64,000 nt of DNA, taken from positions 62,001 through 126,000 of IMG/VR virus record IMGVR_UViG_3300050821_002957. One strand, given 5' to 3'. The position numbers were made by a program, and so were the translations under genes. Below, piece after piece: positions 2,546 through 62,459 of this stretch (positions are counted from its first letter, which is position 1; each line of letters begins with the position of its first letter). A model generated the notes under the pieces. The model ran no database searches and was not told the origin of the DNA. It saw only the letters and a list, made by a program, of their open reading frames with translations.

Positions 2546-3058
2546 ATGAAACTGAGAGCCGTATTACCATTCTTGCTTTTACCCCTCCTTCTCGTATCAT
2601 CATCCCTATCTGTTGCTGATTCCGAAGCTGCCTCACCACAAGTCATTATGATGATGTATCATCGTGCGTATCCAAAGTACGTACCAGAACACATCACACC
2701 AGAATTTCTGAAAGAAAAACATGAATTAGAACAGGTCTACAAAAAGTGGGCTGTAATCTTTCATATGGAAGATTGGAATACAGAAGTGACGCCGGTCCCG
2801 CTTTCCTTCCTTAAAGAATTTTGTCCGTCTGAATGTTTTGCCGGAAGCAACTGGAACATCTATGACGAAAGCGGTGTAATGTTCATTCTCCAACGATCAG
2901 AATACACTAACGAAATGAAAAAGAGTTTGCGTCAGCGACATGTAAGTATCTGGTCTGATCAACGAAACAGCGTTCTTCATGAAATTCTTCACAATGTAAT
3001 TGAACATGGATACGAAGAAGCCGTAGTCAGCACACTTGCAAATTTGTTGAATCCCTGA
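2546..3058 (+). CDS. secreted protein with HExxH motif (putative zincin metallopeptidase)
   Basis: Signal peptide MKLRAVLPFLLLPLLLVSSSLSVA; LHEILH motif; ATAAATA promoter at 2535. Confidence 0.6.
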   Translation: MKLRAVLPFLLLPLLLVSSSLSVADSEAASPQVIMMMYHRAYPKYVPEHITPEFLKEKHELEQVYKKWAVIFHMEDWNTEVTPVPLSFLKEFCPSECFAGSNWNIYDESGVMFILQRSEYTNEMKKSLRQRHVSIWSDQRNSVLHEILHNVIEHGYEEAVVSTLANLLNP

Positions 3059-7087: not shown

Positions 7088-9538
7088 CTACTTGGTGAAG
7101 TCTGAGAGCTTCATGTTGTCGCCCTGATCCTTCACAAATGGCTTCTTTGCTGCCCCACCATGCTTTGGACAGTTGCCGCCACCCGTTCTGTAAAGACATT
7201 TCTTGTCGCCGCAATACAAATGTGGATTCTTTTCTTTGTTGAGTCGAACTTTCATTGCTGTCGAGTCCCGACCGGCTTCAGCCAAGACAGCTTTGAGCAG
7301 ATTCATGTTCACTTCTTCGTAGTATGTTCCGCCCTGTGCGCCTCTGACTCGCTTCAATCCAAGGCTCGTCAGCGCATTATGTCTTGCTTTTGCATTTCCG
7401 GCACTCTTTTTACGAGATGCAATTTTGTTTAAGTGTTGATCAAGAGACTTAGCCGAGCTTCCTTCGTTCGGCGTCAAGCTCTTATTCGGACCACGATGTT
7501 TCCAGCTTCCTTCTGGTGAAAGATGAACTGACGATGTGTCCTTATGACGATATGTCGAATAGTGTTCTGGATCGCTACTGACGTGACTGTAACCATGCTT
7601 CTTCAAAACCTCATGATGTTGAGCATTGTACATCGCATGGTGTTCCATTTCCGATTCGTCAAACCGTTCTTTGTACTTCGCTGGTTTATCCTTTTTCGAC
7701 CGGATGACTTTCTTTGCAGGTGGCATTCCGACCGCAGCTTTTGATCTACGCTTCATGTCTTCCGGCGTATCTTTGATCGTCATCGTATTGCTTTTGAACT
7801 TGGCGAACTTATTCTTGCCTTCAGACACGTCACCTTTCCAGAAACCAGGATGATGTGTACCAACTTTCTTTTCGTACTTCTCTTGATCATCTGCATCGGT
7901 TGGATGAATTGCTGTTCCGAAAGATCCGTGCTTGACGTGGAGCTTCGATCCATCATGATGACGATATTCTGGTGTCTTATTTTCGTTCGATCCCATGTAC
8001 ATGTAATGCTTATCGTCCGAATCCTTTCTGATTAATGGATGCAAAATCGGCTTATCGACACTATGATCATAGTATCTGGTCTCATCGACTTTTTTGATCG
8101 ACCCCCAAGCAGCAGAGTCTTTCATCTTGGCTTTGTCGTTGTCGGCGAGGAGCTTCTTATCCGGGCACGGCATATCAACAGCGTGCATTCTTCCACAGGC
8201 TTCACACTTCTCTAGCTTGTTTGCTCTTTGGATGTCCTTCGAGTCAGCTTCTTTTAATTTTTCCCAACCAGTCTTCGCTTTTTTTCGTGCTTCCTGTCTA
8301 CGTTCGTTAGCTTTTTCAACATCATCGTCGGACCACATTTCTGGTGTGCTCTTACGATAAGAATCATACGGCGGATAACCAGTTTTGAGATGCCGTGTGC
8401 GCTCTTGCGTCTTGACATCCGGGTAACCTTCAGTGACAAGCTCATGATGCCATTCATGCCCACCATTTCCCTTTTGTGCAGCGGCTTGACGATTCAAATG
8501 ATCGACATAATCTTGTGGCTTCGGATACTTGTGCTGTACGTTTCCACCAAATTTTTTTGGGAGTTCATGGAAACGATCTTGGTGAGCAATGCTGTGCAAG
8601 TGATCGTTGGTAATGTCAGCAGTACGGCTCTTTCCAGTCGGAACGTGAGTAACTTTCATTTTACCAAGAACAGCCTTGTCATTACTTGTTGACTCCTTCA
8701 ATTCTGCCTTATGCATTTTTGCTTGCTTGTCGTGATGATTCCAACGATTTACGTTAGGTTGGAAATTGGAGCCTTTAGGTGGTTGCGGAGCAAATTCACT
8801 ACCTCTCGCTTTCAAATGAGCATTCATTGCCGAACGATGATCTTCTGGCTTGTTAGTTTTGTACGCCAGTCGAGTTGCTTTAGCTGCTAAAAGAGAATGT
8901 CCAGGATTTGCATCTGATCCAATCTCAATAGAGCCATTGCTAAATCCGCCACTTTCATTAACATTGTTCTCTGGGCCGAGCGCACGAGCAGTGTGAATCG
9001 ACTGAGGATGATCAGTAGTAGGATGACGGTCGCCGCAGACTGCACAGTGAGTGCTCTGATCTGCTTCTTCAACCTTTTTGACTCGACCACCACCATGACA
9101 AGTATGACAATCCGTAGCGTCATTCTTGCCTCTGAGTGAACCAACACCATGACACGTCGGACAAGGAGTGTATCCAGGTGCAGCCGTCCATGAATTGGTG
9201 TGCTTGCTGGCATCTTTCACCCATGCGGTAGCTTCTGACAAAACATTTTTTAACAGAACTTCGGTCTCTTCTCTAACAGTGTGAAAGCGAGTGTCATGAC
9301 CGGCTTTTTTCATAGCTGTCTTTGCTGCCTTTTCGGTCGCAGCATGAACGGTATCTACGTGTCTGTTGCTGGTCATGTCAATAACTCTCCACGGCTTCTT
9401 TGGCGTATTCTCTTTTTCATGCACATGAGTCACATCGCCATAGTCACCAGTAGCGTAGGCTGTATCGTTTTTGAAGCGATGAGCCATACTGGTCATTTGG
9501 GTGTCCGCTTGATTCTTGCGCTTTGAAGTATAGTTCAT
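7088..9538 (-). CDS. His/Lys-rich putative head-internal polyprotein
   Basis: 816 aa of short modules, several with CxxC, separated by (V/L)-x-E-(A/S/G/T) sites typical of T4-type prohead protease substrates. Confidence 0.6.
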   Translation of the reverse strand: MNYTSKRKNQADTQMTSMAHRFKNDTAYATGDYGDVTHVHEKENTPKKPWRVIDMTSNRHVDTVHAATEKAAKTAMKKAGHDTRFHTVREETEVLLKNVLSEATAWVKDASKHTNSWTAAPGYTPCPTCHGVGSLRGKNDATDCHTCHGGGRVKKVEEADQSTHCAVCGDRHPTTDHPQSIHTARALGPENNVNESGGFSNGSIEIGSDANPGHSLLAAKATRLAYKTNKPEDHRSAMNAHLKARGSEFAPQPPKGSNFQPNVNRWNHHDKQAKMHKAELKESTSNDKAVLGKMKVTHVPTGKSRTADITNDHLHSIAHQDRFHELPKKFGGNVQHKYPKPQDYVDHLNRQAAAQKGNGGHEWHHELVTEGYPDVKTQERTRHLKTGYPPYDSYRKSTPEMWSDDDVEKANERRQEARKKAKTGWEKLKEADSKDIQRANKLEKCEACGRMHAVDMPCPDKKLLADNDKAKMKDSAAWGSIKKVDETRYYDHSVDKPILHPLIRKDSDDKHYMYMGSNENKTPEYRHHDGSKLHVKHGSFGTAIHPTDADDQEKYEKKVGTHHPGFWKGDVSEGKNKFAKFKSNTMTIKDTPEDMKRRSKAAVGMPPAKKVIRSKKDKPAKYKERFDESEMEHHAMYNAQHHEVLKKHGYSHVSSDPEHYSTYRHKDTSSVHLSPEGSWKHRGPNKSLTPNEGSSAKSLDQHLNKIASRKKSAGNAKARHNALTSLGLKRVRGAQGGTYYEEVNMNLLKAVLAEAGRDSTAMKVRLNKEKNPHLYCGDKKCLYRTGGGNCPKHGGAAKKPFVKDQGDNMKLSDFTK

Positions 9539-11290
9539 TTACTTCTTCTTGCCCACCATGCCCACGTTCCACTTAACGTGTTGTTTGCATTTTTCATTCG
9601 GATGTTCAGCAGCAACCTTTCCACAATTGTTGCAAATTGGATCTTTGAGCTTCTTCTTTTGATCGGCTGTCAAACCTTCCGCCATCAACTTGGCGTACTC
9701 TTGTGAAATAGTTACCGACTCAGTTTTGACTCCACCCGGTTTGTCGCCCGGAAAGCCAGTTTTCTTTTTTGCTGCGGTATGCTTTACGTAATTCTTCTCG
9801 TCAACCAAACCAGGAGTGCCATGTTTGCCGCCCATATTGAGAACCCACCCGCCATGACTAGAACGCATGACAGCTTTGCCTCTTTGTGTTTGACCTTGAG
9901 GAGTTTTGATGTGAACTGTGTCACCGTGACCAATTTCATTAAAGGCTTCGACGATTTCTTCTTCGGCCATATCATTGTGCGAGTCTGGTCCACTGTAATG
10001 CTGACACATTGGGCTGTGCTTCTCATTATCATGGCAAGAGCTTACGCAATCTTTGGTTGGTTTGAATTTTCCAACAGCAAGTCCTTGAGAACGAGACGAC
10101 CGCATAAGTGCTGCTTTGTCGTCAGAAACGTCTTCTACGATTGCACTAACTTTTTTTTTAGGATCTACAGATTCCATAAGACCGGCCACTTCAGCACGGT
10201 GTTTGATGTAACCAGCAGCCGCAGCAATGATCGGATCGACTTCTTCATTCTGAGAAGCAGTATCGTTCATTCCCTTCATGCGATTATTGGCTTTTTGAAT
10301 TGCCTTTGGTCCCTTGTCTTCCGGGTCGGCCTGCATGTTTGAAAATGCATTCGCCGGATTGTACATAATTGCTGATGCATGTGAGATCACGTCCGCATCG
10401 CCACCAGGAGTCTGTGGATAAGCAGTAGGAATGTGAGCCTGTTGTGTCACACCGAAATCATCAGCTTCATTCTTTGATGTTGGGCACATGCACATCGAGC
10501 CATTGCAAGATTTCGGCATATTACCACTGGAGCCACCACATGTCGGGCAATAGCTGCATGGACAATTTTTTGTGGTACAAGTATTTTTTGCTTTCTCATC
10601 TTCAGTCATACCGACCATTGCATCATTGGCATCTTGAAAATTTGCAGCTTCACCCTCGTAGGTTGCGCCTTCTGGGTTATTTGCATAATCAGCTTGAGGA
10701 TTGTTGAATCCAATCTCACCTTCGCCCATAACACGCTTTATTTGTGCTTGTGCTCTACGACGCTTCGGGACAACTTTGTTTGCAACTTTGTTTACGACGC
10801 CCTTCATCTTATTCAAAATTTCGCCTTCATAAGTTGCGCCCTTTGGATTTTTTGCATAATCGGCTTCCGGGTCTTTGAATTCAATGTCGGTCTCACCCAT
10901 CATGTCAGGAGAGGAAGACTCTTCATCTTCACCAAGAGAATGATGATTCTTGGCTGCGCTCTTCATAGCCTTTGCGCCGTACTTTTCTACACCGACCTTG
11001 TGAGCGATGGCACCTGCGTAAGCAGCACTCTTTCCACCAGCTTCGAGCTTACCTACGAGCTTCTTGAAACCAATATGCTTCTCAGCTACGAAGACTTCTA
11101 CTAACTGTTTTGCCGTTTCAAACGCAATGCCCTGTGCAATACGAATGCCCATACGTTGCTGATTGTTATTGTACACCGATTCATAGATGTCGTTGACTTC
11201 CTTACGAACATCTTCAGGCAAAGAAGCGTAAGCCGGATATTTTGCAATGTCATTGGTCTCGACATCGTTCATGTTTCTAAAAAAGCTCAT
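9539..11290 (-). CDS. putative head-internal polyprotein or scaffold-like protein
   Basis: 583 aa with frequent hydrophobic-x-E sites; internal repeat GE.EI.F..P.ADYA.NP.GATYEGE; late promoter at 11321-11327. Confidence 0.6.
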   Translation of the reverse strand: MSFFRNMNDVETNDIAKYPAYASLPEDVRKEVNDIYESVYNNNQQRMGIRIAQGIAFETAKQLVEVFVAEKHIGFKKLVGKLEAGGKSAAYAGAIAHKVGVEKYGAKAMKSAAKNHHSLGEDEESSSPDMMGETDIEFKDPEADYAKNPKGATYEGEILNKMKGVVNKVANKVVPKRRRAQAQIKRVMGEGEIGFNNPQADYANNPEGATYEGEAANFQDANDAMVGMTEDEKAKNTCTTKNCPCSYCPTCGGSSGNMPKSCNGSMCMCPTSKNEADDFGVTQQAHIPTAYPQTPGGDADVISHASAIMYNPANAFSNMQADPEDKGPKAIQKANNRMKGMNDTASQNEEVDPIIAAAAGYIKHRAEVAGLMESVDPKKKVSAIVEDVSDDKAALMRSSRSQGLAVGKFKPTKDCVSSCHDNEKHSPMCQHYSGPDSHNDMAEEEIVEAFNEIGHGDTVHIKTPQGQTQRGKAVMRSSHGGWVLNMGGKHGTPGLVDEKNYVKHTAAKKKTGFPGDKPGGVKTESVTISQEYAKLMAEGLTADQKKKLKDPICNNCGKVAAEHPNEKCKQHVKWNVGMVGKKK

Positions 11291-11323: not shown

Positions 11324-11914
11324 TTAGAGTTTTGACAACCTACAATGTCTGCTATTAAACATTTTTTCTTTTGTAGTTTCTGACAAAATTTTCCCTTTAT
11401 GAGCACGACCGATAGCTGCTTTGGCTTCATCTGAGTGCGAATAGGTCATTCCAACTGCGTACTGATTTCCTCTCATCTGTTCCCGTTTTCGTGCCCGACC
11501 TTCTTCAGTGAGCTTTGCTTGCTTTGCCCATTCAGCGGCCTGGAGTCTGGCCTCAGGATGTTTTTGAAAGTAAACCACCCTGCACTCTCGAAGTTTTTGT
11601 TTAGTCGCTTCAGAATGTTTGTGACCGTAACCTTCACCACCCGGCTTCATGTTATAGCCTGTTTCTATTGTGTTGAGTTTAACGATCCAATCTCGTTCTT
11701 TCTGATTGAGTGATTCTTTATCAGTAGCGACATCTATTGTTTCGATCAGAAAGACTTCAGAACCATATTTTCGGATCGCACGATGAATGGTAGTTTGAGA
11801 GCCTTTTCGTACTTCTGATTTATGTTGCTGAAATCGCTTCATTGCAGTAACCATCGTTTTGCCAACGTACTGCTTTCCATTGATTGTGTTTGTAAGAGTG
11901 TAAATAATCATCAC
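11324..11914 (-). CDS. GIY-YIG homing endonuclease with NUMOD3 motifs (Seg-like)
   Basis: IIYTLTNTINGKQYVGKT...RFQQH...E...N; HSEATKQK, HSDEAKAA and LSETTKEK repeats. Confidence 0.9.
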   Translation of the reverse strand: MMIIYTLTNTINGKQYVGKTMVTAMKRFQQHKSEVRKGSQTTIHRAIRKYGSEVFLIETIDVATDKESLNQKERDWIVKLNTIETGYNMKPGGEGYGHKHSEATKQKLRECRVVYFQKHPEARLQAAEWAKQAKLTEEGRARKREQMRGNQYAVGMTYSHSDEAKAAIGRAHKGKILSETTKEKMFNSRHCRLSKL

Positions 11915-11941: not shown

Positions 11942-12685
11942 CTACCCCATGATAAAATCTATAGGCAATTGGAATTCGTCGTGAACTTGCTGTTCTAACT
12001 TTTCGATATTGTCGAGTGCTTTTTGGTAAATGTCGGCACCGTTTAAAGTTACACCACCGAGCAGGGCAACTCCTTGATATTTAATCAGGTTCTCACCCCA
12101 CTGACGCCGTAGCAATTCAGTCGTATAGGCCATCAGCCAACGATCTCGATAGACATCTGGGTAAACATCCGGGTCCAAAATTCTATAACATTCAATAATG
12201 TAGTAATCGCCGACAGAGACCGACGACCAATCCAACAGAATGCGAAGTTGCATCTGGTGACGAACAAACAAGATACCAGGGTCCGCATTGAACTCAAATT
12301 CCAAGAGTGCAAGATGCTTCTGCATGATGTCGTAGTGAATGATCGATGTACTCGTAAAAGTATACAAGTCATTCAAGCGCATCTGATATTGAACGTCGAA
12401 CAACCCGATGTTGCTGGCATTTGAATTTGCAGTCGGCAAAACACGAGTAACAGAGATGATCGGGGCCGGAATCGGAATGTACTCATTTGTAATATCCTGA
12501 GCCGTCATTTGATGGGCAAGATACACTCTTTCTACGCCGTCGAAGTGATAGTCTTGAAAGTAGAGAAAGGCATCATCTACACGGTCTTCAATTTGCCCTG
12601 GATCGAGGTTAATTTCGATTACAGGAGCACCAAGTCTACGTAAGCAATAGTCGATCAGTTCTTGTCGGTTTGTTGGTAACGCCAT
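11942..12685 (-). CDS. gp13: neck protein, T4 gp13 homologue
   Basis: LIDYCLRRLGAPVIEINLD..QIEDRVDDA..YFQDYHFDG; QWGENLIKY.GV.L.GGVTLNG. Confidence 0.92.
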   Translation of the reverse strand: MALPTNRQELIDYCLRRLGAPVIEINLDPGQIEDRVDDAFLYFQDYHFDGVERVYLAHQMTAQDITNEYIPIPAPIISVTRVLPTANSNASNIGLFDVQYQMRLNDLYTFTSTSIIHYDIMQKHLALLEFEFNADPGILFVRHQMQLRILLDWSSVSVGDYYIIECYRILDPDVYPDVYRDRWLMAYTTELLRRQWGENLIKYQGVALLGGVTLNGADIYQKALDNIEKLEQQVHDEFQLPIDFIMG

Positions 12686-12693
12686 ATCACTAT

Positions 12694-13779
12694 TTATTGC
12701 CAGCTTACTAAGGTAACAGAAGTAGACAAACCAGTTCCAGTATCAGGGCCAACAAAAAATCCTAACGTTGCAGGCATTCCAGTGTATGTGGTCCTAGCCA
12801 GTGTTCTGAAAGGTAGAAAAACCAAGCCATCCATTGAATAGGTGTATGTGATGTTTACACCATCGTCGGAAACTCTGAACCACATTATTGGCCCTACATA
12901 GTTACCGTTCGGAGCAGTTGCATCTAAACCACCCCAACTATTTGGACCACTCCAATGTTCTGTTGCTAACATATAATTGGTGGTTCCTTGATTCACCAAT
13001 CCCATGCTGAAAAATGCTCCCGTTGAATCTGAGACCATAATACCTAAATTAGACCAGGCTCCGTTCGATTGAGCTAACATGAAACCGGCTGTTCTTGTAT
13101 ATGGTGTAGACGGCAAAGGAATTGTAGCACCTACAATCATGTTACAAGATGATGCTGTTCCAGTCAGAGTCATAACTCCATTCGTCACCAAAGTTCCAGC
13201 ACCACCACAATTACCTGCCAAATTCAAAGGAGTCCACGAAAGGTTGCTAGGAAGAGTTACCGGAAAACCCAACACCCAATCTGCCCAAGTAAAACCATCG
13301 CATTCACTTACATCTGGTATATCAGTTGAATAATACAGAGCACCTGCGGAAGCACATGTAGGACGAGCAGAAAATGTTCCTCTAGTAGCACTGGAGCCTC
13401 CTCCACCACCACCGGAAGCATTGATCGTAATGCTCGCTAGACCACCGCTAAAAGATGGTGTAAGGGAAATACCAGAACCAGGAACTAAATTAAAAGTCGT
13501 AGCCGTACCCACAGCGGAACCATTACTCTGAATCGGCAAAGAACCAGGAGGCGTAGCAGTGATAATGGTCTGATTGTTTACAGAATCGTCGGTGCAAGTC
13601 GTGCCAGTGCTACAGTTCAACACAGGTCTTGGTGTTAACATGCTACCTGCATTCTTGATGATATAATATGCAGCCTGTGTGATCCCACTTCCTTTGACTT
13701 CAAGATTGACTGCCGCAATCAATACCATAATGCTAACGATGAATGCGATTGTATGTTTGATGTTGAACCGATTTTTCAT
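12694..13779 (-). CDS. fibre-like protein with N-terminal signal or TM segment and C-terminal beta-sandwich
   Basis: Hydrophobic N-terminus, Gly/Thr-rich linkers, lectin-like C-terminus. Confidence 0.6.
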   Translation of the reverse strand: MKNRFNIKHTIAFIVSIMVLIAAVNLEVKGSGITQAAYYIIKNAGSMLTPRPVLNCSTGTTCTDDSVNNQTIITATPPGSLPIQSNGSAVGTATTFNLVPGSGISLTPSFSGGLASITINASGGGGGGSSATRGTFSARPTCASAGALYYSTDIPDVSECDGFTWADWVLGFPVTLPSNLSWTPLNLAGNCGGAGTLVTNGVMTLTGTASSCNMIVGATIPLPSTPYTRTAGFMLAQSNGAWSNLGIMVSDSTGAFFSMGLVNQGTTNYMLATEHWSGPNSWGGLDATAPNGNYVGPIMWFRVSDDGVNITYTYSMDGLVFLPFRTLARTTYTGMPATLGFFVGPDTGTGLSTSVTLVSWQ

Positions 13780-13781
13780 AT

Positions 13782-15380
13782 TTAATGTGCTCCCATTCCG
13801 TACACTGCAACATATCCGCTGTTGGTGGTTACGAATATTTTACCATCGGCCACTAAAGGTGATACATATTTAGCCATGCTTCCTAACGCATCACCAACTA
13901 CATTAGTGCTGTTCCAATATTCCGACAACGTTACGGGATTATAAGCGTATAATACTCCCGACCGTATTGAACCGAATGCTCCTCCAGCGGTCGTGGCTAC
14001 AAACCACAATATTCCATTGAAGGCACCCATTGAAGAAATCGTCATAGCACTCGCACCAGGGAAAGAAAAATTCGTTCCTGAAATTGTAGGTGTGGTGTTA
14101 AATGTTGTTCCACTATACGTAAAAGCGTAGATTGGACCACCAGTGATTGGAAGGTACAAAGTATTCAAACCAAAAGCGCCGCCATAAGAGCCGGAAGAAC
14201 CTCCGTAAATATTATTACCTGTAGTCGTAAAATTCTGTAGCGGACACCCCGAAGAACCTTGCAAATGTCCCATACACGAAGTACTGACATTATACACACT
14301 AAAATCTTTACCAGCGATCTCTAATTGACCTCCAGGTAACAGCATAACTCGCCCTGAACTAAGGTCTGCATCCGAGCCATTTAAAGCTGCATAGTTAGCT
14401 GGAGTAAACCAATCCACAACAGCAAGTGTCGGACTCAACTTGACCACCGACTCACCATAATTGGTAGTACCATCATAGGTTCCGTTGCCAGTTGCTACGT
14501 ACAAATTCCCTGAGGCATCTACAGCAGGACCACCGCCAGCCATCCAAACCCCGCCGCCATAGCCATTAGGTGTAGAGCACCAAATACCAATTTGCGATAA
14601 ACTGGTAGTCGAATAACCCACTACCCATCCGTGATAAACACCATTGTCTTCTGGCATCCCAGCAAATGCTACATAAACATTTCCGTTAGCCAAAGTAATG
14701 GATGATCTACCGTTTGCAAGAAAGCTGTTTAACACTACATTAGATCCGCTTAGATCATCCCCGCCTCCGGGATTACCACCGCCTACTACCGTTCCTGACA
14801 CCACGATTGTATTTAAGAGTGTTCCAGTGGTCAAACTTAAAATTCTGATTTGCCACGAAGGTGAAGTAGCGTCTCCACATAACAAGTAAAGTTTTTGAGC
14901 TACAACATCTACTGCCGGGGTCGCAATACAACCTAAATGTCCTTGATAATAACCTTCAGATCCAGACGAACCTGGATATGAGGCAATAGAGTTTCCTATC
15001 ACATTGGTCCAAACAGATGTGAAACGATTGGCATCATAAGCATAGACCCGATTTTCAGCGGTAGCCACGATGATCAAATCTTGTTGACCAGAAGATGTAA
15101 CGACACCAGGGACAAACAAAGGCTGAGTCCATGCATCTCCAATTATTGGTAATGTAGTGAGTAGCCCAAAATGTCCTCCAGTGACATTCGCTGGAGTTAA
15201 CACAAATTCTAGATTATTCCAACTTCTTCTATTGGTGTCCCAATGCCCTGTAAGCATTGATATGGGGGCTTGAGGTACAGCCACCGGACTAAAGACATTT
15301 GATTGTGCCCCGAGAGGCAAACTATTTGAGTTGGAAAAAATAAGAAGAAAAACGATCCATTTAATAAGAGTACGTGACAA
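13782..15380 (-). CDS. secreted PQQ-like beta-propeller protein
   Basis: Signal peptide; [31 protein letters not shown]...L...DADL.S and P.VADGK.FV motifs. Confidence 0.75.
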
Positions 15381-16641
15381 TGCCGCCTCCTACTACTGCA
15401 CTTCCCAAGTTTACACACACAGCTTGACTAACTGGTGTCGGTTGTAATTGAAATGTGCTATCAATGGTGATACCGCCGAGGGGAGGCATTACACCTGTGA
15501 TGGATGTAGTGCCAGTACCACAATTAGACCCGGTTCCATATACAAGTTGGAAAGAAACTGCACTGGCAAAATTGATCATAATACCACAAATCGTAACTGG
15601 GTTACCTGTTGACACCGCAATAATCTGAGTCAAACCTGAAGCAGAAAGTGTAATCGGCGCACTGCTTGTACAAGTTACTCCACCGCCGCCAGCCCCTAAG
15701 CCAGCGATTACATCTTGAACATAGTGAGTCGTTGCAAAATTTGTCGAGTCATCGGAGTCCGAAGGATTTGGTCCAGAAACAGTCCCACTAAACTGACAGT
15801 TGTCATTCAGCGGACAAAGATTGCTACCTGTAGCGCCGACACCTTGAGTTGCTGCTGCTCCTAAACCTAGATTCGTTCTCGCTGTTGCAGCATTTGCCAA
15901 ATCCGAAAGATTGTTTGCTGCGGCTGCAAAATCGGTTGTAGGATGAGTTGCAATGGAACCAAGTCCCAGATTAGTTCTTGCCGTCGATGCTGATCCCAAA
16001 TCCGAAAGATTGTTGCTTGCCAAAAGACGAAGACCAAGAGCAGTTTGAAGATCAGTCTGTGAACCAATTGTTCCACCAATCGAACCCCAATTTGCACCAC
16101 CACCACCCCCGGCTGCACCCACCTGAGTAGCCGCTGTAACTCGACCGTCTAGACCAATCGTGATCTGTGGAATATGTGTAGAATCGCCATACGTGCCATT
16201 GGTGACACCACTGTTGGCAATCGTGGGATTAGGGTAGTTACCCGCCAACGATCCGCCTGCACTCGCTGTAGCACCGAGGAAGGCACTGGTGTTCTGAACT
16301 GCTGCCGATCCCAAACCTAAATTTGTTCTTGCCGTCGATGCTGATCCCAAATCCGAAAGATTATTACCTGCTACCAAGAAATAAGAAGCTGGATGAATCG
16401 CTGCTGTCCCGATTCCCAAATTAGCCAGAGTTGTAGAGACACTTGCTACGTCAGACAAATTGTTCGCAGGGTTCAACGGAGTGTATCCTAGGAGATTCTG
16501 TTTTAGGGCAATAGCATTGAAAGCCGCAGTGATGTTGCTGTTGACAGCCGAAGGAATATTCTTGATTGCAATGTTATTTGGAAGTGGTGTTTGTGCTGAA
16601 AGGGTAGCCACACAAAAAGCTAAGAGTAAGAGTTTTTTCAT
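15361..16641 (-). CDS. fibre-like protein with signal peptide and NNLSD...ARTNLGLG repeats
   Basis: Start [17 protein letters not shown] at 16641; four NNLSD repeats typical of phage tail fibres. Confidence 0.7.
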
Positions 16642-16931
16642 TAGAATTGATCCGCCGTCGCTGCTACTATGTTTGCAGCCAATTGTGCTTCGTCTGCCGT
16701 CATATTTAGTGACCGATACAGATACCATGTACCGTTGTAAAAATATCCAACCGATTGCGATCCTGACAAACTTACTGTGTCAGCAGGTGTTACGGTTTTC
16801 CATGCATTGTTATAAGCTGTTCCCGGATTTGAGTCGTTCCCATTGTAAGGATCGACGTAAAAATTATACGTCGTATTTACGGTGGCCTGTCCTGAGAACA
16901 CAGCCTTGACAGCATACAACGGTATAAACAT
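16641..16931 (-). CDS. small protein with YVDP..GND.N.G...AWKT motif
   Basis: Motif typical of the N-terminus of beta-helix (DUF1565-like) proteins. Confidence 0.55.
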
Positions 16932-16933
16932 GA

Positions 16934-17272
16934 TTACAGTGATCCGTAAATCGGAATGACTTGTGTCAAAGAACCTTGATCAACCGGAGAACCAGAAAGT
17001 CCCGATACCAACTTCAACCATCTCAGCTTGCCTACCGTGGCAATCATATTCGGCGGCAACATAGAAACCATGTACTGTGTATACGACGGAATCGTGATGT
17101 TAAGCTCATCTCCAGTGTCATCATAAACAGGGCCAAAATTTATACCATCGGTCGATGATTGGAACGCCAAGGTTGCCGATGTCCATCCTGTAATGAATTG
17201 AAATCCAATAATGGTGTTCCCTGTCAAAAACAACGAACTGGATATAGCTGTACCAGAGGTAAATGTCATCAT
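16934..17272 (-). CDS. small beta-rich virion-associated protein
   Basis: WTSATLAFQSSTDG..F..VYD motif; ATAAATA promoter upstream. Confidence 0.6.
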   Translation of the reverse strand: MMTFTSGTAISSSLFLTGNTIIGFQFITGWTSATLAFQSSTDGINFGPVYDDTGDELNITIPSYTQYMVSMLPPNMIATVGKLRWLKLVSGLSGSPVDQGSLTQVIPIYGSL

Positions 17273-21100: not shown

Positions 21101-21637
21101 TTACTTCTTCAAAGCGACGGCGGCGGCGAGTGTCTGAGCAGTCTTCGTCTTGATTTTCTTCAACATCGCTTTGTCAGCCCTGCCCATAGCCATCTTAGGA
21201 GATACGTGCGGAGCCAATTTTGCTAACGACGTAACCGAAGACGAATTGAGTTGAGAGATAAAGATATTGATTGCTGCTGTAACTGCCTGGATTGCTGCAA
21301 GGACTGTCGGTGCATTTGATCCAAATGCAGGTGCCGCAACCTGAGCGAAAGCTGACGTAATGACAGCGATCTTTTCAGCATTGGTATCCTTGGAATCTAG
21401 TTCAGTGGTGGATGTATTGACTGCCGTTGCTACGCTTGTTGCATAGGTGGAGACAAGATTTGCTGTTGCCTGATCGAGCTTACCTGTTGCTACGAGAGCC
21501 TGAGTAACCACGACTGCAACCGAAGCTGCATCCGACACAGCGTTAAGTGCTACTACCAAATTCGACGCTGGTGTTCCGCATCCAACCGATGCCAGACCCA
21601 TCACACACGCCATAAAAACTGCTAAAATGGACTTCAT
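21101..21637 (-). CDS. predicted lipoprotein
   Basis: MKSILAVFMACVMGLASVGC lipobox-like signal; Ala-rich helices. Confidence 0.65.
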   Translation of the reverse strand: MKSILAVFMACVMGLASVGCGTPASNLVVALNAVSDAASVAVVVTQALVATGKLDQATANLVSTYATSVATAVNTSTTELDSKDTNAEKIAVITSAFAQVAAPAFGSNAPTVLAAIQAVTAAINIFISQLNSSSVTSLAKLAPHVSPKMAMGRADKAMLKKIKTKTAQTLAAAVALKK

Positions 21638-29962: not shown

Positions 29963-31519
29963 TCAGAACTGGATCAAAATTTTGGAATCCTCAATCTGAT
30001 CACTTGCACGCTCTACTGGACGACGATTTTCAAGATAAAGAATTTTACCAGAATACGGTAAAATATCCGGCTTGATGATACTTGCAATCGTAAAGACACT
30101 AGTATTATCTGGCGGTGTAGTCCAAGTCGTGCTTACCGTTGCTGTACGACTGATGCCCACATAAGCTGAAATAAGTCTCGTTTGACCACTACCTGTTCCT
30201 GCTGTAATCTTAATGGTCTGTCCGTTATAAAAACTATTGACACTCGATGCGCCAGCCGGAAACACAATGGTTGTTCCTGTGCCACTCGACGCTGTTGCTG
30301 CATAAGTCGAAAGAACACCTGTTGCATCTGCTCCAATAACCGTTTCGCCCGGTATAAAGGTTCCAAGACACTGAACCAGACGAAGAGTTTTTGCCGCAGG
30401 CCCATCAGGTACAACAGTAGTTGGGGTCCAATCAAGAACCACACCAGTCGCTCCACTAGTGCTGCCAGTCACAATTTCGTCAGGATTGAAAATGGTTCCA
30501 CTGACTGAACTAAAATTGAGTCGAACAGCCTGATCATAATCGGTAGCTGTTGCTGGATCGCCGCTGCCATCATTCAAAATTGGATTTGACAACAAACCAA
30601 GTACACGATAGTCGTTCGATACCGTAAAGTTTCCGTTTTCGTCATAGATCAACTGAACGTCAACTAACACATTGAAACCACCAAGCTCAGTGACCGGATC
30701 TGATCCATGACCACCAAAAGGACTGATTGTTGCCGTCGCCGTCGCACCGTTGGAAGACACACCACCATTCGTAATCGCTACGTTTGCATAGGTGTAACCG
30801 GAACCTGTTGCCGTCATATTGATGCCTGTCACGTTGCCGCCTGCAATTGTTGCTGTGGCCGTTGCACCAGTTCCATCTCCAGTAATCGTGATCGTCGGCA
30901 CCTGAGTGTACGATGTGCCTGCTGTTACGATATTGATTCGATCAACTGTTCCGGGAACTGCTGCCGTCTGGACTTGCCATTGAGACGATCCATCATTTGA
31001 TGCCAAAGTTGAAACCGGAATCCAATTGGTCGTGACGAAACTTACTACATCGGCTGAGTTGACCGTGTACATGTACTTCCACTGATAGCCATCTGCGCTC
31101 GTAACCACACTTGTCGAAGTTCCTGATGGTTGGACCGTCGAAGGCACTCCATTATTGTTGTTCAGACACTTATAAACCTGCAAATTGGTGTTGGTTACAT
31201 AAAATGGCGGATTTGGAGAAGCTGGATCGAACAAATCGATGGTATTGTCGTATTGTGAATAAGTCGTGTTGACCACCCAGGTATTTCTTGGAATAGCCAA
31301 ACTCACATTGTTTGCTGTGATGTTTTTAAGAGACAACATATTTCTATATGCTGTCGAAAGGTTTAACTCACAATCAATCGGTGACGGCGGCGAGTTATCA
31401 TCAACCCACGGCAATGTGCCAGCGATAAAAAGGTACATGTACTCACCTGACGTGGCAAAGCTGTCTTCAAACTGTGAAGCGGCGTAAATTCGGCAATTGG
31501 TTGTGACTATAGCAGCCAT
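29963..31519 (-). CDS. gp8: baseplate wedge subunit gp8
   Basis: VYKCLNNN...STVQP, DGYQWKYMY, GHGSDPV.ELG, YSG.ILYLENR.P..R..DQ.ED. Confidence 0.9.
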   Translation of the reverse strand: MAAIVTTNCRIYAASQFEDSFATSGEYMYLFIAGTLPWVDDNSPPSPIDCELNLSTAYRNMLSLKNITANNVSLAIPRNTWVVNTTYSQYDNTIDLFDPASPNPPFYVTNTNLQVYKCLNNNNGVPSTVQPSGTSTSVVTSADGYQWKYMYTVNSADVVSFVTTNWIPVSTLASNDGSSQWQVQTAAVPGTVDRINIVTAGTSYTQVPTITITGDGTGATATATIAGGNVTGINMTATGSGYTYANVAITNGGVSSNGATATATISPFGGHGSDPVTELGGFNVLVDVQLIYDENGNFTVSNDYRVLGLLSNPILNDGSGDPATATDYDQAVRLNFSSVSGTIFNPDEIVTGSTSGATGVVLDWTPTTVVPDGPAAKTLRLVQCLGTFIPGETVIGADATGVLSTYAATASSGTGTTIVFPAGASSVNSFYNGQTIKITAGTGSGQTRLISAYVGISRTATVSTTWTTPPDNTSVFTIASIIKPDILPYSGKILYLENRRPVERASDQIEDSKILIQF

Positions 31520-31546: not shown

Positions 31547-34500
31547 CTAGGAAATGTGTGATACGCCTAAAATTGTCCGAGGCGTCGTGATCTGAATTCT
31601 TGAAACTCCGAGTTGGATCTGCAAATCCGTCGTTCGGATATCTGCACTACCTGCAATGGTCTTCGGTCCAGTTGTCACCTGAAGACGAGCAACACCGCTT
31701 TGTGTCTTGGCGGTTAAGATTGTGATTCTTGCTGTACCACTTTGTGTCTGAGTTGTTGCCGCAGTGATCAACGAGAGACCAATCATAGTTCTCTCATTAC
31801 CAGCAATCTGAATACGAGCCTTACCCAACTGTGTCAAGAACTCTGTCTTGTAGATGTCGGCGCTGCCCATGATATTATGAGCGTTATTGGAAACTGTGAT
31901 TCTTGTTACGCCGCTTTGAGTTTTGAGCGTCGTATTGCGGATTGCTGTATTTCCGATTTGTGTTCTATCTGTCGTATTGCGAAGGTTTGCCAATCCGGTA
32001 ATGACATGAGGCGTTGTGATCTGAAGACGAGACAAACCAGTAAGGGTCTGTGTTGCTCCATGTTGAATGTTTGCTGCACCAATCTGAGTTTGAACTGTTG
32101 TAACTTGAAGACGAGTCAAACCAGTAATAGTGTGTAATTCAGCACCACGTTGAATACGAGCTACACCATTCTGAGTCTTGAGACGAGTAAGTTTGAGGTA
32201 AGCGCCACCAAGCTGAGTCTGTTGTGTTGTTCTTCTGATTGCAGCGGAACCCTGTTGTGTCTGGGAAACTGTTCCAGCATTGAGGTTAACGCCACGCTCA
32301 TTGAACAATTCAACACTAAGCTGGTTATAAATGGTGTCTAGTTCATAATCAAACAAGGCACGATCATAAAAGAGCGCATAGGCCAAATATCCATCAAAAT
32401 AGCCCATTGTCGTCGGACTTGCAGATACTTCGGTCTGACCAAATTTACTTGAACCAAAAGTCGAATTTTTAAACAATGCAGCATTCTGAGCCACCGGAAC
32501 AAATTCTACCGAAGGCTGACCAAAATACCATCCATCTGAATTTGTAGTTGGATTGATCGGATAGGTAGAAAATGTCGCCGAAATACTATCTGTCGTCTGA
32601 AGAGTCTGAACCGTTTCGACGTTACCAGTGATAATCCCGTCATTGAAGCGCAAAGCCGCCATGAAGAAGTTTCCACTTCCGATGGATGCTGGTGGGAAAT
32701 TAACGGTTTCTTCTACGCCGTCATATCGTGCTCGGAAAGAGACTGCGCCGCCTGTTCTTAGATCGATTGCAAATCCGTTATTACCGGAATCTGGAATCAT
32801 GCCAACCAAAGTGGTGTTTTGGCTGACATCATTAGCACTGGCAATGACTACGACAGTGCATTCTTTCAAATTGACAGGAACACCAGTTGCATTTACAATT
32901 TCGCTGTTGGTCGCATTAAGATGGACACCCTGACTTACAAAGGTTCCATCGTTAGACTCAGACAGAATACTTGTACCTAAAGTGCCATCATACGGCTCAG
33001 TACCGGAATAATTTGGGCTAACATTATAGACGATTTGCGGATTGATACCTTCCAAAAACGAATAGATGACTTGATTTCCAACGGCTGGAATGGATTGTTG
33101 GTTATTAGTGATCAACAACGAACTGTCTATACAAATGTTCGAGCGAATGCTACGTGGGTCAGTGAGCACGTCGCCAATCACAAGATTTGCGAACATACTT
33201 AACTGTGTATTACCATAACCACCAAGACTTCCGGCCCAGTAATTTTGATTTGGCGATGGGTAAGTCTCGTTGAATCCTTCGTAAGGAGGGAATCCTATGA
33301 AACGAAATTGAGAAAGCGTACCAAGATTCGGACCAAGAACACCAACTTCAGTGAGTGAGTTACCATTTGTGATCACCACGTAGGCGTCTGCATTGATCTT
33401 CGTGCGGCGTTCTGGGAAATTGATGATCGAGCCAATGACTACGTTCTGAAAATTACTGATTTGCGTATTACCAGGACCATTAGTGCTCCAGTAGTTTTGG
33501 TTCGGAAATGGATAAATCCGATTGAACGTATAGTTTGGTGGGAATGCATAGAACTTCATTGCATCCAAATCTTTGTTTCGAGCACCTACCACACAAGGAG
33601 TCAGAGTGTTGAATTGCAGCGTGAACGTATTGTCTACTTCAAGGGATAGATCAAAAAATTTAACTCCAATAAGAAGAGTAAAGACACGAACAAGCTCCAA
33701 AAAATTGGTTTCTGGCTCATTGAACGAAACAACGGTTCCGAACATTTTAAGCCCAGCCGGATGCAACAACGTTTTTACGATGTCACGGTACTTGTCGATA
33801 GTCTCACCAACTCGCAAGTCATATGAAAAATCTTGCCAGTAAAACGAATCTTGAATGATCTTATTTGAGCTTGCAAAGCTGTCCGTTGTGGTCGGTGCAT
33901 CTCCAATTCCACCTGCTTTGCCCGGAAGCCACATTCCTGCGGTATTAGCAGTAATTCCCAACATCGGAGGTAAGACTGCGCCGGAACCTTCTGCTGTATG
34001 AATGGTCACCGTTGGATTGGTCAAGAAACCCAAACCAAAATTTGTAATTGCAATCGATTGAATTCCGCCCTTTACGTGAGTGATCGAATATTCAGTAGTG
34101 CCATCCGGGATTACCGTCCAGGCCGTAGCGACCGTAGCTACCTTAGTTGTGCCATTGTACGAGACGATTGTATTGCGTTGGCCTTGACCTGTGCCGCCAA
34201 TCAAATCGATTTCATCGCCTGCAAAAAAATTGTCTTGAGTAGGTGAATTGGCCGACAACAAAATTTGTGTTGCGTTTAAAAGATCACCACTGGAAAAATC
34301 TGAGTGTACATCCGAAAAATAATAAAGACCAGGGATACAAACACCATCCGTCTGTGGATCGGGATTTGTGTTCACAGTATCATCTGGACCAAAATATGGT
34401 TCCAAATAAAATGTCGTCGGAGGAGGCTGGCAACCACCGACATAGATCGTCTGAAAAATTGACGTAATGACAGCCGTCGCCGGGGCCAGTTCTCCACCAC

Positions 34501-35578
34501 CACTGATCGTGATAGTTTCGCCTACCTGATAGTTTTCCCCTGGCGTGTTAATTAGAAGCTGCTGGAGCAATTGATAAGCCTGCTCCCACTGAACGTCCGT
34601 CGATGGCTCTTCAAGGTCTTGTACGTCGCCTAAATCGCTTTGCGGGGGTGGTGCGACAGGATAGGAAATCTTGACTTGTTCTGGAAGATTTGTATTTGGA
34701 TCGATCTGAAATGTGCCATTGACGCTCGAAAGGGTCAATTCAGTAATCGTTCCCCCAGCGACATATTGTTGTGTTGCAGATTCGACACTTGCAGTTGCGC
34801 CCGAATAGACACCAACCAATTGACGATTTACGTATCCGAATGTATCCGTCGTTGTCGTGGTCTTCATGATGGTCTGAACGTACCAAACTCCATCAGAAGC
34901 CCGGAACAAGTCAACCTTTGGATAGTAAAACTCCATCTCCTGGTTGAAAAGAATACGGAACAAGAAACGGAAAGAATTTTCAGTGCCTCGTGCTTGATAA
35001 AAATCTTTAATGTGTTTCAGGATGTTTCGTTTGTCAGCCAGGATGTTACCTGGAATCTCGTACATGAAATCATCACGGAAGTAGTCGATAAACCGATCAA
35101 TTGTGGTGTCAATGTCTCGGTACTGAAGCAAAGTTCGAGGATAGAGAGCATCACGAATCGAAATCCTGGTGTTCGGCAACGGAATAAACGAAGAGTCCCA
35201 GGCATCGACCGTCGCAATCATAGTGACAGGATCGTATGCAGTAATTTTTCTGGTGTAACCTTTCGTCGGGCCGTTGGTACAGACTACATGCATTCCTACA
35301 TAAGCGTCGATTTTCGTAGAAGGTGCATTCAAAGCGATATTTGATGAAACCTCTAGCGGAATAGGATTCAAAGTTACAGACGTAAGCGTGGCATCAATAA
35401 TTTTGCAGGCGTATGCTTCTTCACCATTCTTTTCCAACCATTCATAATATGCTTTCAAAAACGCAATGAACGTAGGATCAGCATCACGAACAAAGTCAGG
35501 AAGCTGTGTCTCGATGATTTGTGAGATCGTTCTTTGCGGATTAGGAAGACTCAGTGGGAGCGAAGGAATTGTTGGCAT
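31547..35578 (-). CDS. gp7: baseplate wedge initiator gp7 with LamG-like domain and C-terminal 14-aa repeats
   Basis: QLPDFVR...FI.FLKAYYEWLE, KDFY.ARGT..S..FLFRILF, IQDS.YWQDFSY, LLHPAG.K.FG. Confidence 0.88.
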   Translation of the reverse strand: MPTIPSLPLSLPNPQRTISQIIETQLPDFVRDADPTFIAFLKAYYEWLEKNGEEAYACKIIDATLTSVTLNPIPLEVSSNIALNAPSTKIDAYVGMHVVCTNGPTKGYTRKITAYDPVTMIATVDAWDSSFIPLPNTRISIRDALYPRTLLQYRDIDTTIDRFIDYFRDDFMYEIPGNILADKRNILKHIKDFYQARGTENSFRFLFRILFNQEMEFYYPKVDLFRASDGVWYVQTIMKTTTTTDTFGYVNRQLVGVYSGATASVESATQQYVAGGTITELTLSSVNGTFQIDPNTNLPEQVKISYPVAPPPQSDLGDVQDLEEPSTDVQWEQAYQLLQQLLINTPGENYQVGETITISGGGELAPATAVITSIFQTIYVGGCQPPPTTFYLEPYFGPDDTVNTNPDPQTDGVCIPGLYYFSDVHSDFSSGDLLNATQILLSANSPTQDNFFAGDEIDLIGGTGQGQRNTIVSYNGTTKVATVATAWTVIPDGTTEYSITHVKGGIQSIAITNFGLGFLTNPTVTIHTAEGSGAVLPPMLGITANTAGMWLPGKAGGIGDAPTTTDSFASSNKIIQDSFYWQDFSYDLRVGETIDKYRDIVKTLLHPAGLKMFGTVVSFNEPETNFLELVRVFTLLIGVKFFDLSLEVDNTFTLQFNTLTPCVVGARNKDLDAMKFYAFPPNYTFNRIYPFPNQNYWSTNGPGNTQISNFQNVVIGSIINFPERRTKINADAYVVITNGNSLTEVGVLGPNLGTLSQFRFIGFPPYEGFNETYPSPNQNYWAGSLGGYGNTQLSMFANLVIGDVLTDPRSIRSNICIDSSLLITNNQQSIPAVGNQVIYSFLEGINPQIVYNVSPNYSGTEPYDGTLGTSILSESNDGTFVSQGVHLNATNSEIVNATGVPVNLKECTVVVIASANDVSQNTTLVGMIPDSGNNGFAIDLRTGGAVSFRARYDGVEETVNFPPASIGSGNFFMAALRFNDGIITGNVETVQTLQTTDSISATFSTYPINPTTNSDGWYFGQPSVEFVPVAQNAALFKNSTFGSSKFGQTEVSASPTTMGYFDGYLAYALFYDRALFDYELDTIYNQLSVELFNERGVNLNAGTVSQTQQGSAAIRRTTQQTQLGGAYLKLTRLKTQNGVARIQRGAELHTITGLTRLQVTTVQTQIGAANIQHGATQTLTGLSRLQITTPHVITGLANLRNTTDRTQIGNTAIRNTTLKTQSGVTRITVSNNAHNIMGSADIYKTEFLTQLGKARIQIAGNERTMIGLSLITAATTQTQSGTARITILTAKTQSGVARLQVTTGPKTIAGSADIRTTDLQIQLGVSRIQITTPRTILGVSHIS

Positions 35579-37411: not shown

Positions 37412-37825
37412 TTATCTCAATCTCTCAAGGAAAAAATCTACGGTCTGTAAGTCTCGAACATTCAACACATAAAATGTAATCGTTGCGTTGTATCCGTTGT
37501 TGTCCGGGTCCGCAACTACCGCAACCGTTTGCAGTTGGACTCGCTTCTCAAAATTTGTGATCACATTTTGTATTGAAGTTTTAATGCCCAATGCCGTGAT
37601 CGGACTGATGTTTTCAAACAAAAGTGCTGTCGCATTGCAGCCGATCTCTGGATGAAACGGGCGCTCATAGTTTTTTGTCAAAACTAGATTCACCACGGCT
37701 TGCTTCACAGCATCGGCATCGTACAGAATACCGATATCTTTTCGCACTGGATTGGCGATAAAGGAAAGGTTTAGATCAGAGTAACGATTGGTGATAGTCT
37801 GCGGCACAAGACTATTTAGTGCCAC
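37412..37825 (-). CDS. gp25: baseplate wedge subunit gp25 (true start may be GTG at 37807)
   Basis: YSDL.LSF..NP...AVKQAV.NLVLT..YERPFHP.IG...LLFE...FLERLR; late promoter at 37813-37819. Confidence 0.93.
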   Translation of the reverse strand: MALNSLVPQTITNRYSDLNLSFIANPVRKDIGILYDADAVKQAVVNLVLTKNYERPFHPEIGCNATALLFENISPITALGIKTSIQNVITNFEKRVQLQTVAVVADPDNNGYNATITFYVLNVRDLQTVDFFLERLR

Positions 37826-40220: not shown

Positions 40221-40237
40221 GCACATATATAGTGGTG

Positions 40238-61992: not shown

Positions 61993-62459
61993 GATTGTTG
62001 TTTCTCCAAATACAATATTGCTTCTTTTAAAATCTTGGGATCATCTTGAACATTCCCCAACAATACATTACATGTTAGACACAAAATCCCTCTGACCTTG
62101 TTAGTTACGTGAGAATGATCCACATTAGGAATCGTTTTCCTAGTGACTCGATCCAATACCACCTTACAAATTGCACAGCAGCCACCTTGTTCTGCAAATA
62201 TCAAATCGAAAGTTTCTGGTGTAATTCCATACTTATGCATTCGTCTAGATTTTGGACCGTTTACCTTACGCCAATGTGCAAGGTAACTTTTATGTCTAGG
62301 CGTTTGTTTCGTTGCTCGTCGGCACGCCACACACTTTTTTGTGCTTACATATCGAGTTGTGGCACCACACTTCACACACGCATGTCCATCAAACGTTTCT
62401 AGTGGTTTTTTCGGTCTGTATTGTTTACACGGTTTGTATTCTTTCATTTTTTTCTTCAA
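61989..62459 (-). CDS. Endonuclease VII-family (His-Me finger) homing-type endonuclease
   Basis: KYGIT...F......QGGCCAIC...VDHSH.T.KVRGILC..CN..LG...D. Confidence 0.88.
   Translation of the reverse strand: MKKKMKEYKPCKQYRPKKPLETFDGHACVKCGATTRYVSTKKCVACRRATKQTPRHKSYLAHWRKVNGPKSRRMHKYGITPETFDLIFAEQGGCCAICKVVLDRVTRKTIPNVDHSHVTNKVRGILCLTCNVLLGNVQDDPKILKEAILYLEKQQS

Follow-up and report, generated by a model that had tools for sequence, protein, structure and literature searches.

A Recurrent Fiber/Propeller/Lectin Gene Cassette with Putative Export Signals in the Tail Module of a T4-Like Soil Phage

Why would genes embedded in the virion operon of a tailed phage begin with signals for export from the cytoplasm? 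We analyzed a 64,000-nt window, the whole stretch from base 62,001 to base 126,000 of the 405,631-bp IMG/VR virus record IMGVR_UViG_3300050821_002957, which comes from a soil metagenome and is rated complete; positions given below are those of the window unless the genome or another locus is named. On its minus strand a T4-like module (11.9–40.2 kb) includes three consecutive genes, here called A (15361–16641), B (13782–15380), and C (12694–13779), directly upstream of the gene for the gp13 neck protein. The initial annotation had noticed that all three start with signal-like N termini, and the coordinates, the strand, and the n- and h-regions of these N termini all held up when we checked them. 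It is routine to annotate the genes of tail modules as virion parts and to predict host range from them; the three genes show that fiber- and lectin-like “receptor-binding” genes can bear export signals and spread, along with a secreted propeller, among phages that are not related. The reading that we arrive at, and to which we give an even chance, is that A, B, and C make up a mobile glycan-binding module that is exported through Sec and works at the host cell envelope during infection, probably by masking receptors.

Signal-Like N Termini Upstream of gp13

Signals were called with a home-made rule combining hydropathy and the residues at positions −3 and −1, together with a comparison of homologues, and this procedure underlies all counts given below. 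The ATG of A shares bases with the stop codon of the upstream open reading frame (ORF; TAATG), and its N terminus has an MKK n-region (+2), an 11-residue h-region (mean Kyte–Doolittle hydropathy 2.85), and then LSA|QTP, giving a signal peptide of residues 1–16 with predicted cleavage at LSA|Q (16594–16641, minus strand). B starts at a TTG that lies 5 nt after an AGGAGG Shine–Dalgarno sequence (15386–15391, minus strand) within the 3′ end of A; its n-region (+2), 8-residue h-region (hydropathy 3.19), and polar c-region lead to LGA|QSN, giving a signal peptide of residues 1–25 with predicted cleavage at LGA|Q (15306–15380, minus strand). The ATG of C is found 2 nt past the stop codon of B and is followed by an n-region (+3) and an h-region of 15 residues, the upper end of the usual range of about 7–15 for signal peptides (residues 10–24; 13708–13752, minus strand), which largely coincides with a helix spanning residues 7–23 in the AlphaFold2 (AF2) model. 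The −3/−1 residues are small or neutral in A (L-S-A|Q) and B (L-G-A|Q), and C offers only weak candidates (I-A-A|V); its segment is either a signal peptide or an uncleaved signal anchor. Pfam and NCBIfam searches of the three proteins found no lipobox, no C-terminal domain of the type IX secretion system (T9SS; Por_Secre_tail), and no PEP-CTERM, and a motif sought after the signals (T-AAFNA) was not general.

Such an arrangement is exceptional among T4-like phages. In 80 T4-like loci found via gp13, the three positions preceding gp13 contain 174 genes in total, of which a single one, encoding a small lipoprotein, is signal-like, vs. three out of three here; over all ORFs of these loci the count is 6 of 887. 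In the present genome the rule is satisfied at one start or another by ~23 of the 659 ORFs, and even with this generous set a run of three has a P value of ~0.02. Given the frequency of 1/174 at equivalent positions, three signals in a row are not a matter of chance. Signal-like N termini are also present in 102 of the 120 best relatives of B, where variable sequence precedes a conserved mature start. Since the sequence drifts while the mature start is kept, the N termini of the B family behave as real signal peptides.

These comparisons bear on the simplest alternative, namely that the hydrophobic N termini are mis-called starts or structural helices of ordinary tail proteins assembled in the cytoplasm. 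The signal calls come from a home-made rule, A has a longer upstream ATG at 16728, B combines its TTG start with an in-frame internal ATG at codon 42, and C has a segment longer than is usual in signal peptides. Starting A at 16728, however, would create an 88-nt overlap with the preceding ORF and leave the hydrophobic segment in place; the TTG of B has a perfect AGGAGG, whereas codon 42 has no Shine–Dalgarno sequence; the signal-like N termini are kept open in those 102 of 120 relatives and in the partner families described below despite sequence drift; and positive n-regions would place the bulk of each protein outside the cytoplasm. We consider this alternative very improbable, and we hold with good confidence that A, B, and C are predicted correctly as Sec-exported proteins.

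Fiber, Propeller, and Lectin Folds

The NNLSD fiber repeats, PQQ-like propeller, and lectin-like domain that had been proposed for A, B, and C are borne out by PHROG and Protein Data Bank (PDB) matches, AF2 models, and Foldseek searches. A (426 aa) contains four NNLSD...NLGLG (ARTNLGLG) units at approximately residues 57–266 (15844–16473, minus strand), which match PHROG tail fibers (phrog_2282, 3e-34) and the structure of the short tail fiber gp92 (PDB 9zd7, 3.7e-21) and are 51–70% identical to the repeats of signal-bearing fibers in two other loci (L005 and L006). Its C-terminal tip domain (approximately residues 296–426; 15364–15756, minus strand) has four cysteines and resembles small viral proteins in the ESM Atlas (TM 0.69–0.73); this tip is also 31–56% identical to proteins encoded beside related propellers in loci L002, L010, L176, and L177. 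The A-like partner proteins of L002, L003, L176, L177, and L184 likewise have signal peptides ending in A|Q. Relatives found via the fiber repeats are signal-like in 15 of 120 cases, and the other 105 lack a signal and have attachment-type N termini.

B (532 aa) is modeled as an 8-bladed PQQ/BamB-like beta-propeller (AF2 pLDDT 91.2), an assignment that also draws on Foldseek, VIA, and Atlas comparisons. Its structural neighbors are YxaL, BamB, tetrathionate hydrolase, and PQQ dehydrogenases (Z 31–35, rmsd 2.1–2.7 Å, at a sequence identity of 10–18%), all of them extracytoplasmic. The Pfam PQQ_2 profile reaches 21.6 bits on B, below its cut-off of 27.6, and only the fold is common to B and the PQQ-dependent dehydrogenases; NCBIfam BamB (TIGR03300) reaches 14.6 bits against a cut-off of 285, and B has no cysteine at the cleavage site. 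Among the 14 closest sequences, three of the five cysteines of B are invariant (C151, C168, and C268) and two are at least 90% conserved (C369 and C379). B also has invariant Asp, Lys, and Trp residues and a nearly invariant His (H250, D337, D339, and K358).

The family of B is large and extracytoplasmic. A word search retrieved more than 697 relatives (~520 aa), with no match among 50,697 GenBank phage records. In species genomes the cellular homologues (27–36% identity) belong mostly to Acidobacteriota, and also to Sorangium (Myxococcota), Verrucomicrobiota, Bacteroidota, and others; these cellular copies are usually longer and have lipoprotein or signal N termini. Atlas neighbors with TM 0.85–0.88 are bacterial clusters in which the propeller is fused to TIG, Big_1/2, Invasin, Calx-beta, or BACON domains. 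In soil bacteria the homologues of B are surface proteins, and B belongs to an extracytoplasmic family captured by viruses. One propeller subfamily has a conserved WCGRDG straight after the hydrophobic segment, which is not a canonical lipobox (P0004, P0006, P0044, P0050, P0085, P0109, L010:9935–11563, and L176:8001–9581).

C (361 aa; phrog_19068, 1.8e-16) combines the N-terminal hydrophobic segment with a fiber-type module and a ConA-like jelly roll of the DUF1349/LamG type at residues 131–361 (12697–13389, minus strand; AF2 pLDDT >90). Foldseek matches this domain to 3mep, 3o12, DUF1349, the C-terminal domains of GH43 proteins, and legume lectins (E 1e-6, TMt ~0.7), and the Atlas matches it to DUF1349 (TM 0.72); Pfam gives no sequence match. 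The domain has 1,350 relatives, in which it is always C-terminal, and its matches in GenBank phages are limited to Mycobacterium cluster phages and one huge uncultured phage. Hydrophobic N termini occur in 29 of the 149 best relatives, ~80% being without one, and at least 17 cluster representatives among the 29 have the exact architecture of C, in which a hydrophobic N terminus is followed by GSGIT..AAY..NAGS.LT.R..LN. Two proteins of this architecture end late operons of several signal-bearing proteins, and one of them adjoins an SLT lysin and an integrase. We also considered whether the genes encode spanins, in which an i-spanin with an N-terminal transmembrane segment and a periplasmic coiled coil is paired with an o-spanin lipoprotein, and they do not fit: C has the transmembrane topology but is all-beta with a lectin domain, and A and B are not lipoproteins.

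Paired cysteines had been claimed for the three proteins and are present, with six in mature A (including C276-x5-C282), five in B, and six in mature C (including C56-x5-C62). The earlier proposal that the proteins are both exported and disulfide-folded fares differently in its two halves: export is well supported by the signals of homologues, the extracytoplasmic structural neighbors and cellular homologues of B, and the signal-bearing partners, while disulfide bonds are a prediction from the even numbers and the conservation of the cysteines. A complex prediction for B (residues 27–532) with C (residues 25–361) scored 0.00, which speaks neither for nor against binding.

Recurrence and Mobility of the Cassette

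We further searched for loci resembling that of B. An alignment of 14 B sequences worked for these scans; the single protein found one viral locus, and a 71-sequence alignment was too diverse. The closest relatives of B (40–58% identity) lie on virus-like contigs, where each propeller is flanked by signal-bearing partners. The full trio is found in L002, L010 (= L254), L176, L177, and L184, that is, on at least five unrelated viral contigs, in the order of a signal-bearing protein with an A-type tip, the propeller, and then a protein with a C-type hydrophobic N terminus followed by GSGIT..AAY..NAGS.LT.R..LN. Six further contigs have paired or fused versions; in L008, L011, and L012 the propeller stands beside a signal-bearing protein with a phrog_19068 or LamG ConA-like domain, and in L175 the A-like and C-like parts are fused in one signal-bearing protein of 794 aa. 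The long cellular propellers have no A-like or C-like neighbors.

The carriers are diverse, comprising this 46%-GC T4-like jumbo phage and elements of 52–61% GC, among them a provirus that has a tape-measure gene and a phage with terminal repeats and an HK97-type capsid. GC content at third codon positions is 0.33–0.34 in the cassette vs. 0.47 in gp13 and gp6. These sequence comparisons indicate that the three genes move horizontally as one cassette. PHROG and Pfam searches with the neighboring genes of the small carriers came back almost empty, and literature searches of incomplete coverage found no description of such a fiber/propeller/lectin cassette. Separately, runs of signal-bearing proteins occur in L005 (9130–12546) and L006 (5512–8432), each with a lipoprotein and a fiber-repeat protein and, in L006, a GDSL esterase; the L005 run adjoins an Acyl_transf_3 gene. 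These runs suggest a wider class of exported tail-module proteins.

Mobility and a cellular ancestry raise the possibility that the genes are “moron” cargo, i.e., bacterial surface proteins that change how an infected or lysogenic cell functions or adheres and have no direct role at phage receptors. In many cellular homologues of B the propeller is indeed joined to adhesin-type Ig domains, an integrase or resolvase or a provirus classification marks some carriers as temperate, and the codon usage of the cassette is deviant; exported auxiliary genes such as pstS are carried by T4-like cyanophages. Yet the fiber-type trio accompanies only the short virus-borne propellers and not the cellular forms, the partners are phage receptor-binding modules, and the cassette here sits within the late lytic operon of a T4-like phage. 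We therefore regard host-benefit cargo as a highly doubtful explanation.

The gene neighborhoods also bear on a different function, in which A, B, and C are secreted depolymerases or release helpers, with B as the enzyme and A and C as its targeting parts, that cut or loosen capsule or exopolysaccharide (EPS) and let progeny escape the matrix and get to nearby cells (a “halo” set). The cassette is in a late operon and adjoins lysis genes in L002 (SLT), L011 (a lysozyme-type endolysin, recognized by eye), and L180 (SLT); other signal-bearing fiber proteins stand beside the GDSL esterase of L006, and in L005 a pectate-lyase-like protein is a few genes off. B has the invariant Asp, Lys, and Trp residues and near-invariant His noted above (H250, D337, D339, and K358) and an enzymatic 8-bladed neighbor in tetrathionate hydrolase, and the hosts are soil bacteria, for which a PEP-CTERM protein of this phage points to EPS-linked sorting. 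Against this, no catalytic family matches B (PQQ_2 stays below its cut-off), no active site was identified in it, and ConA-like domains and fiber tips are binding modules. On balance we find a depolymerase set unlikely.

Virion Parts or Not

If A, B, and C are exported, are they nevertheless parts of the virion? In A and C an export signal takes the place where conventional fibers have their virion-attachment domain; between the signal peptide and the first repeat A has only ~40 residues, whereas its signal-less relatives have long N-terminal domains. The phage also encodes conventional fibers with Pfam Mtd_N and no signal (L173:9725–11053 and L173:11088–12749; genome 37725–40749), which adjoin sheath-, tube-, and terminase-like genes, and one of which has the repeat of A. 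With conventional signal-less fibers present, the phage has no need of A, B, and C to supply its fibers. A signal-less protein of 365 aa just upstream of the trio has a LamG-like motif by eye, although Pfam found nothing in it. Taken together, we think it fairly likely that A, B, and C are not virion parts assembled in the cytoplasm. We had also entertained a decoy arrangement in which the binding domains of A or C equal those of the phage's own fibers and rejected it, as only the repeat of A matches one such fiber and the tips do not.

The initial annotation had offered two options, cell-surface proteins that mask receptors and appendages added to the virion at lysis. In the latter scheme the proteins would mature in the periplasm, fold with disulfides, and join fiber-less or partly armed virions when the holin opens the membrane or after lysis. 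The three genes lie inside the virion operon and immediately precede gp13, A and C are composed of real fiber and receptor-binding modules, and the last late genes of the small carriers all encode signal-bearing fiber-like proteins; in T4, attachment of the tail fibers is the last step and is spontaneous. The same two observations that argue against cytoplasmic assembly, the export signal in place of an attachment domain and the presence of signal-less Mtd_N fibers, also tell against late addition, and neither A nor C has a recognizable virion-attachment domain after the signal. Moreover, the B family is cellular and secreted, dilution at lysis would make late joining inefficient, and we know of no precedent in tailed phages. 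Periplasm-matured appendages are thus improbable, and equal doubt attaches to the general form of the idea, a two-compartment virion assembly in which soil tailed phages would send receptor-binding subunits through Sec and load them when the holin merges the compartments, a pathway that to our knowledge has no known example in Caudoviricetes. Should the proteins turn out to be virion components, there would be an exception to the textbook view that tailed phages build their virions from cytoplasmic proteins only.

A Possible Role at the Envelope of the Infected Cell

The reading that we prefer, in which the cassette acts on the envelope of the infected cell, can be laid out as a sequence of steps. 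The cassette genes would be co-transcribed with the late tail and neck genes, and A, B, and C would be taken up by the host Sec system. Signal peptidase I would cleave A and B, exposing an N-terminal Gln, and C would either be cleaved or remain fixed in the inner membrane, most of the protein then facing the periplasm. Folding in this oxidizing compartment may form disulfides in the C-x5-C loops and between the conserved cysteines of the propeller, yielding a fiber with a binding tip (A), a propeller (B), and a displayed ConA-type lectin domain (C). Acting together outside the cytoplasm, the three could bind, and perhaps process, the polysaccharide or receptor that the infected cell displays on its surface. 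With the receptors on the dying cell and its debris occupied, progeny virions would be spared and competing phages shut out. The receptor-masking role in itself we put forward tentatively, as something clearly short of an even prospect; cleavage, complex formation, and the glycan target are likewise predictions drawn from the signal anatomy, the folds, and the composition of the cassette.

Several points weigh against a role at the envelope. The export calls rest on a home-made rule and on sequence comparison, and the hydrophobic segment of C may be uncleaved. The cassette genes are in a tight late operon with virion genes, whereas the known exclusion genes imm and sp of T4 are early. A and C are made of true receptor-binding-protein modules, and their binding domains are unlike those of the phage's own conventional fibers, which leaves a common receptor unsupported. 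Having no lipobox, T9SS domain, or PEP-CTERM, the three proteins show no evident route to the cell surface. In small carriers (e.g., L180) the late operon ends in signal-bearing fiber-like proteins throughout, and no signal-less alternative was identified there; such a pattern would fit true receptor-binding proteins.

Other Exported Proteins and the Host

The phage encodes about a dozen other signal-peptide or lipoprotein proteins, most of them with Gln at position +1, and the phage thus appears to remodel the host envelope during infection more generally. Judged by eye, Gln follows the cleavage site in A, in B, and in ~9 of the 12 convincing signal peptides of the genome, the sites being A|Q, G|Q, or S|Q. 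One protein of 224 aa has a signal peptide and a C-terminal PEP-CTERM above the Pfam cut-off (L174:4958–5632, equal to G000:C1:172958–173632 and outside the window). No phage-encoded DsbA was found. Within the window, a 178-aa Ala-rich protein with a lipoprotein-like N terminus (..LASVGC) is encoded in the same tail-region operon (21101–21637, minus strand), and two small proteins with clear signal peptides have no family match (42750–43346, minus strand, ..SNA|Q; 2546–3058, plus strand, ..SVA|D).

PEP-CTERM points to a host with an exosortase system and is atypical for Bacteroidota. Gln at +1 of the signal-peptidase I site is the Q-rule of Bacteroidetes (PMC5837995), and Acidobacteriota are not covered in the accessible part of that survey. 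In our data A|Q is also found in the propeller homologues of Acidobacteriota and in 22 of 90 neighboring signal-like ORFs. A Bacteroidota host, considered on the strength of the Q-rule, was set aside as not decisive, Acidobacteriota sharing Gln at +1 and the phage encoding a PEP-CTERM protein. We place the host no finer than a soil diderm.

Genomic Setting of the Module

The T4-like module is laid out entirely on the minus strand, beginning with the gp5 hub/lysozyme (38634–40226) and continuing through gp25 (37412–37825), gp6 (35587–37410), gp7-like (31547–35578), and gp8-like (29963–31519) genes, a DUF4815 protein of 2,261 aa, and a series of small genes that leads to A, B, and C. It is anchored by gp13, the neck protein or head-tail adaptor Ad2 (11942–12685, phrog_211, 2.4e-38), 8 nt downstream of C. 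In blastn comparisons with GenBank phages, nucleotide similarity is confined to the gp13 stretch (~71% to cyanomyovirus gp13). Sheath-, tube-, terminase-, and portal-like genes, labels read from N-terminal sequences only, are found with further fiber genes at genome positions 29–47 kb. Given these genes and the Mtd_N fibers among them, the T4-like structural genes are divided between two distant regions of the genome.

From 18796 down to 11942 the intergenic gaps range from −20 to +9 nt, and between 11 and 23.5 kb both sigma-70-type promoters and terminators are at or below the numbers expected from shuffled sequence. This tight packing, with no excess of promoter- or terminator-like sites, means that A, B, and C almost certainly share a transcript with gp13. 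The T4 late-promoter motif TATAAATA is present a single time in 64 kb, no more than chance predicts; as promoter motifs are not above chance, the timing of expression is read from operon packing alone. A soil metatranscriptome run contains contigs 100% identical to parts of gp13, C, A, and the ORF at 16934–17272 (window 12076–17248), which establishes their presence in an RNA library and is not proof of transcription, DNA carry-over being possible.

A 96-aa ORF (16641–16931, minus strand), whose stop overlaps the start of A, has a weak CBM_6 match and a YVDP..GNDSN.GT motif of the kind with which beta-helix tailspikes typically begin; the ORF may be what is left of a truncated gene at the upstream (insertion) edge of the cassette. 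At the other end, a SegE-like homing endonuclease with GIY-YIG and NUMOD3 (11324–11914, minus strand) is inserted immediately downstream of gp13. It is followed by two Lys/Glu/His-rich proteins of 816 and 583 aa with CxxC...CxxC motifs (7088–9538 and 9539–11290, minus strand), which occupy the place expected for gp14 after gp13 and for which no family was found. Farther away, an 862-aa protein resembles the major vault protein (47907–50495, minus strand; Pfam MVP_shoulder 6.9e-22, Vault_3 2.2e-7).

Comparison with Known Systems

Phages of soil bacteria are almost uncultured, and if the proposed masking or processing of receptors is true, the cassette would amount to a new way, large and modular in makeup, for phages to remodel the surface of these bacteria, and it would be a source of glycan-binding modules. 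Its parts are each recognizable from elsewhere. Like the phrog_2282 fibers and gp92 (9zd7), A has a repeat module and a small beta-rich tip, but typical phrog_2282 fibers have an attachment domain and no signal, whereas A starts with a signal peptide. B has the 8-bladed fold of BamB, YxaL, tetrathionate hydrolase, and the PQQ dehydrogenases; it has no lipobox, however, and it is set apart by invariant residues of its own and by being carried in viruses alongside constant partners. The C-terminal domain of C has the fold and family of ConA-like/DUF1349/LamG tips (phrog_19068, the gp38 region of Mycobacterium phage Thibault, and the Dit CBM2 of phage J-1), and in having a hydrophobic N terminus C differs from ~80% of its ConA-like relatives and belongs to a minority of at least 17 clusters.

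Two known systems can be compared with the cassette as a whole: T5 encodes Llp, a superinfection-exclusion protein (PMC9586334), and phages of Porphyromonas gingivalis carry genes with Q-rule signal peptides, which have been read as an adaptation to host secretion and as potential surface modifiers (PMC10367356). As in the P. gingivalis phages, predicted cleavage by signal peptidase I exposes a Gln in A, B, and most of the other exported proteins here. The P. gingivalis genes, unlike those described here, are small and belong to temperate siphoviruses, and no fiber/propeller/lectin cassette is described there; also, the host of our phage is perhaps not a member of Bacteroidota, given its PEP-CTERM protein and the Gln at +1 in Acidobacteriota.

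The T5 llp gene adjoins the gene for the receptor-binding protein. Llp and Cor are small, single-gene lipoproteins with a lipobox, unlike A, B, and C, which are 361–532 aa long, have no lipobox, and are encoded in a late operon. Like Llp and Cor, however, the products of the cassette are phage-encoded, predicted to be exported through Sec, encoded beside receptor-binding genes, and proposed to neutralize the receptor both on cells under infection and on their debris.

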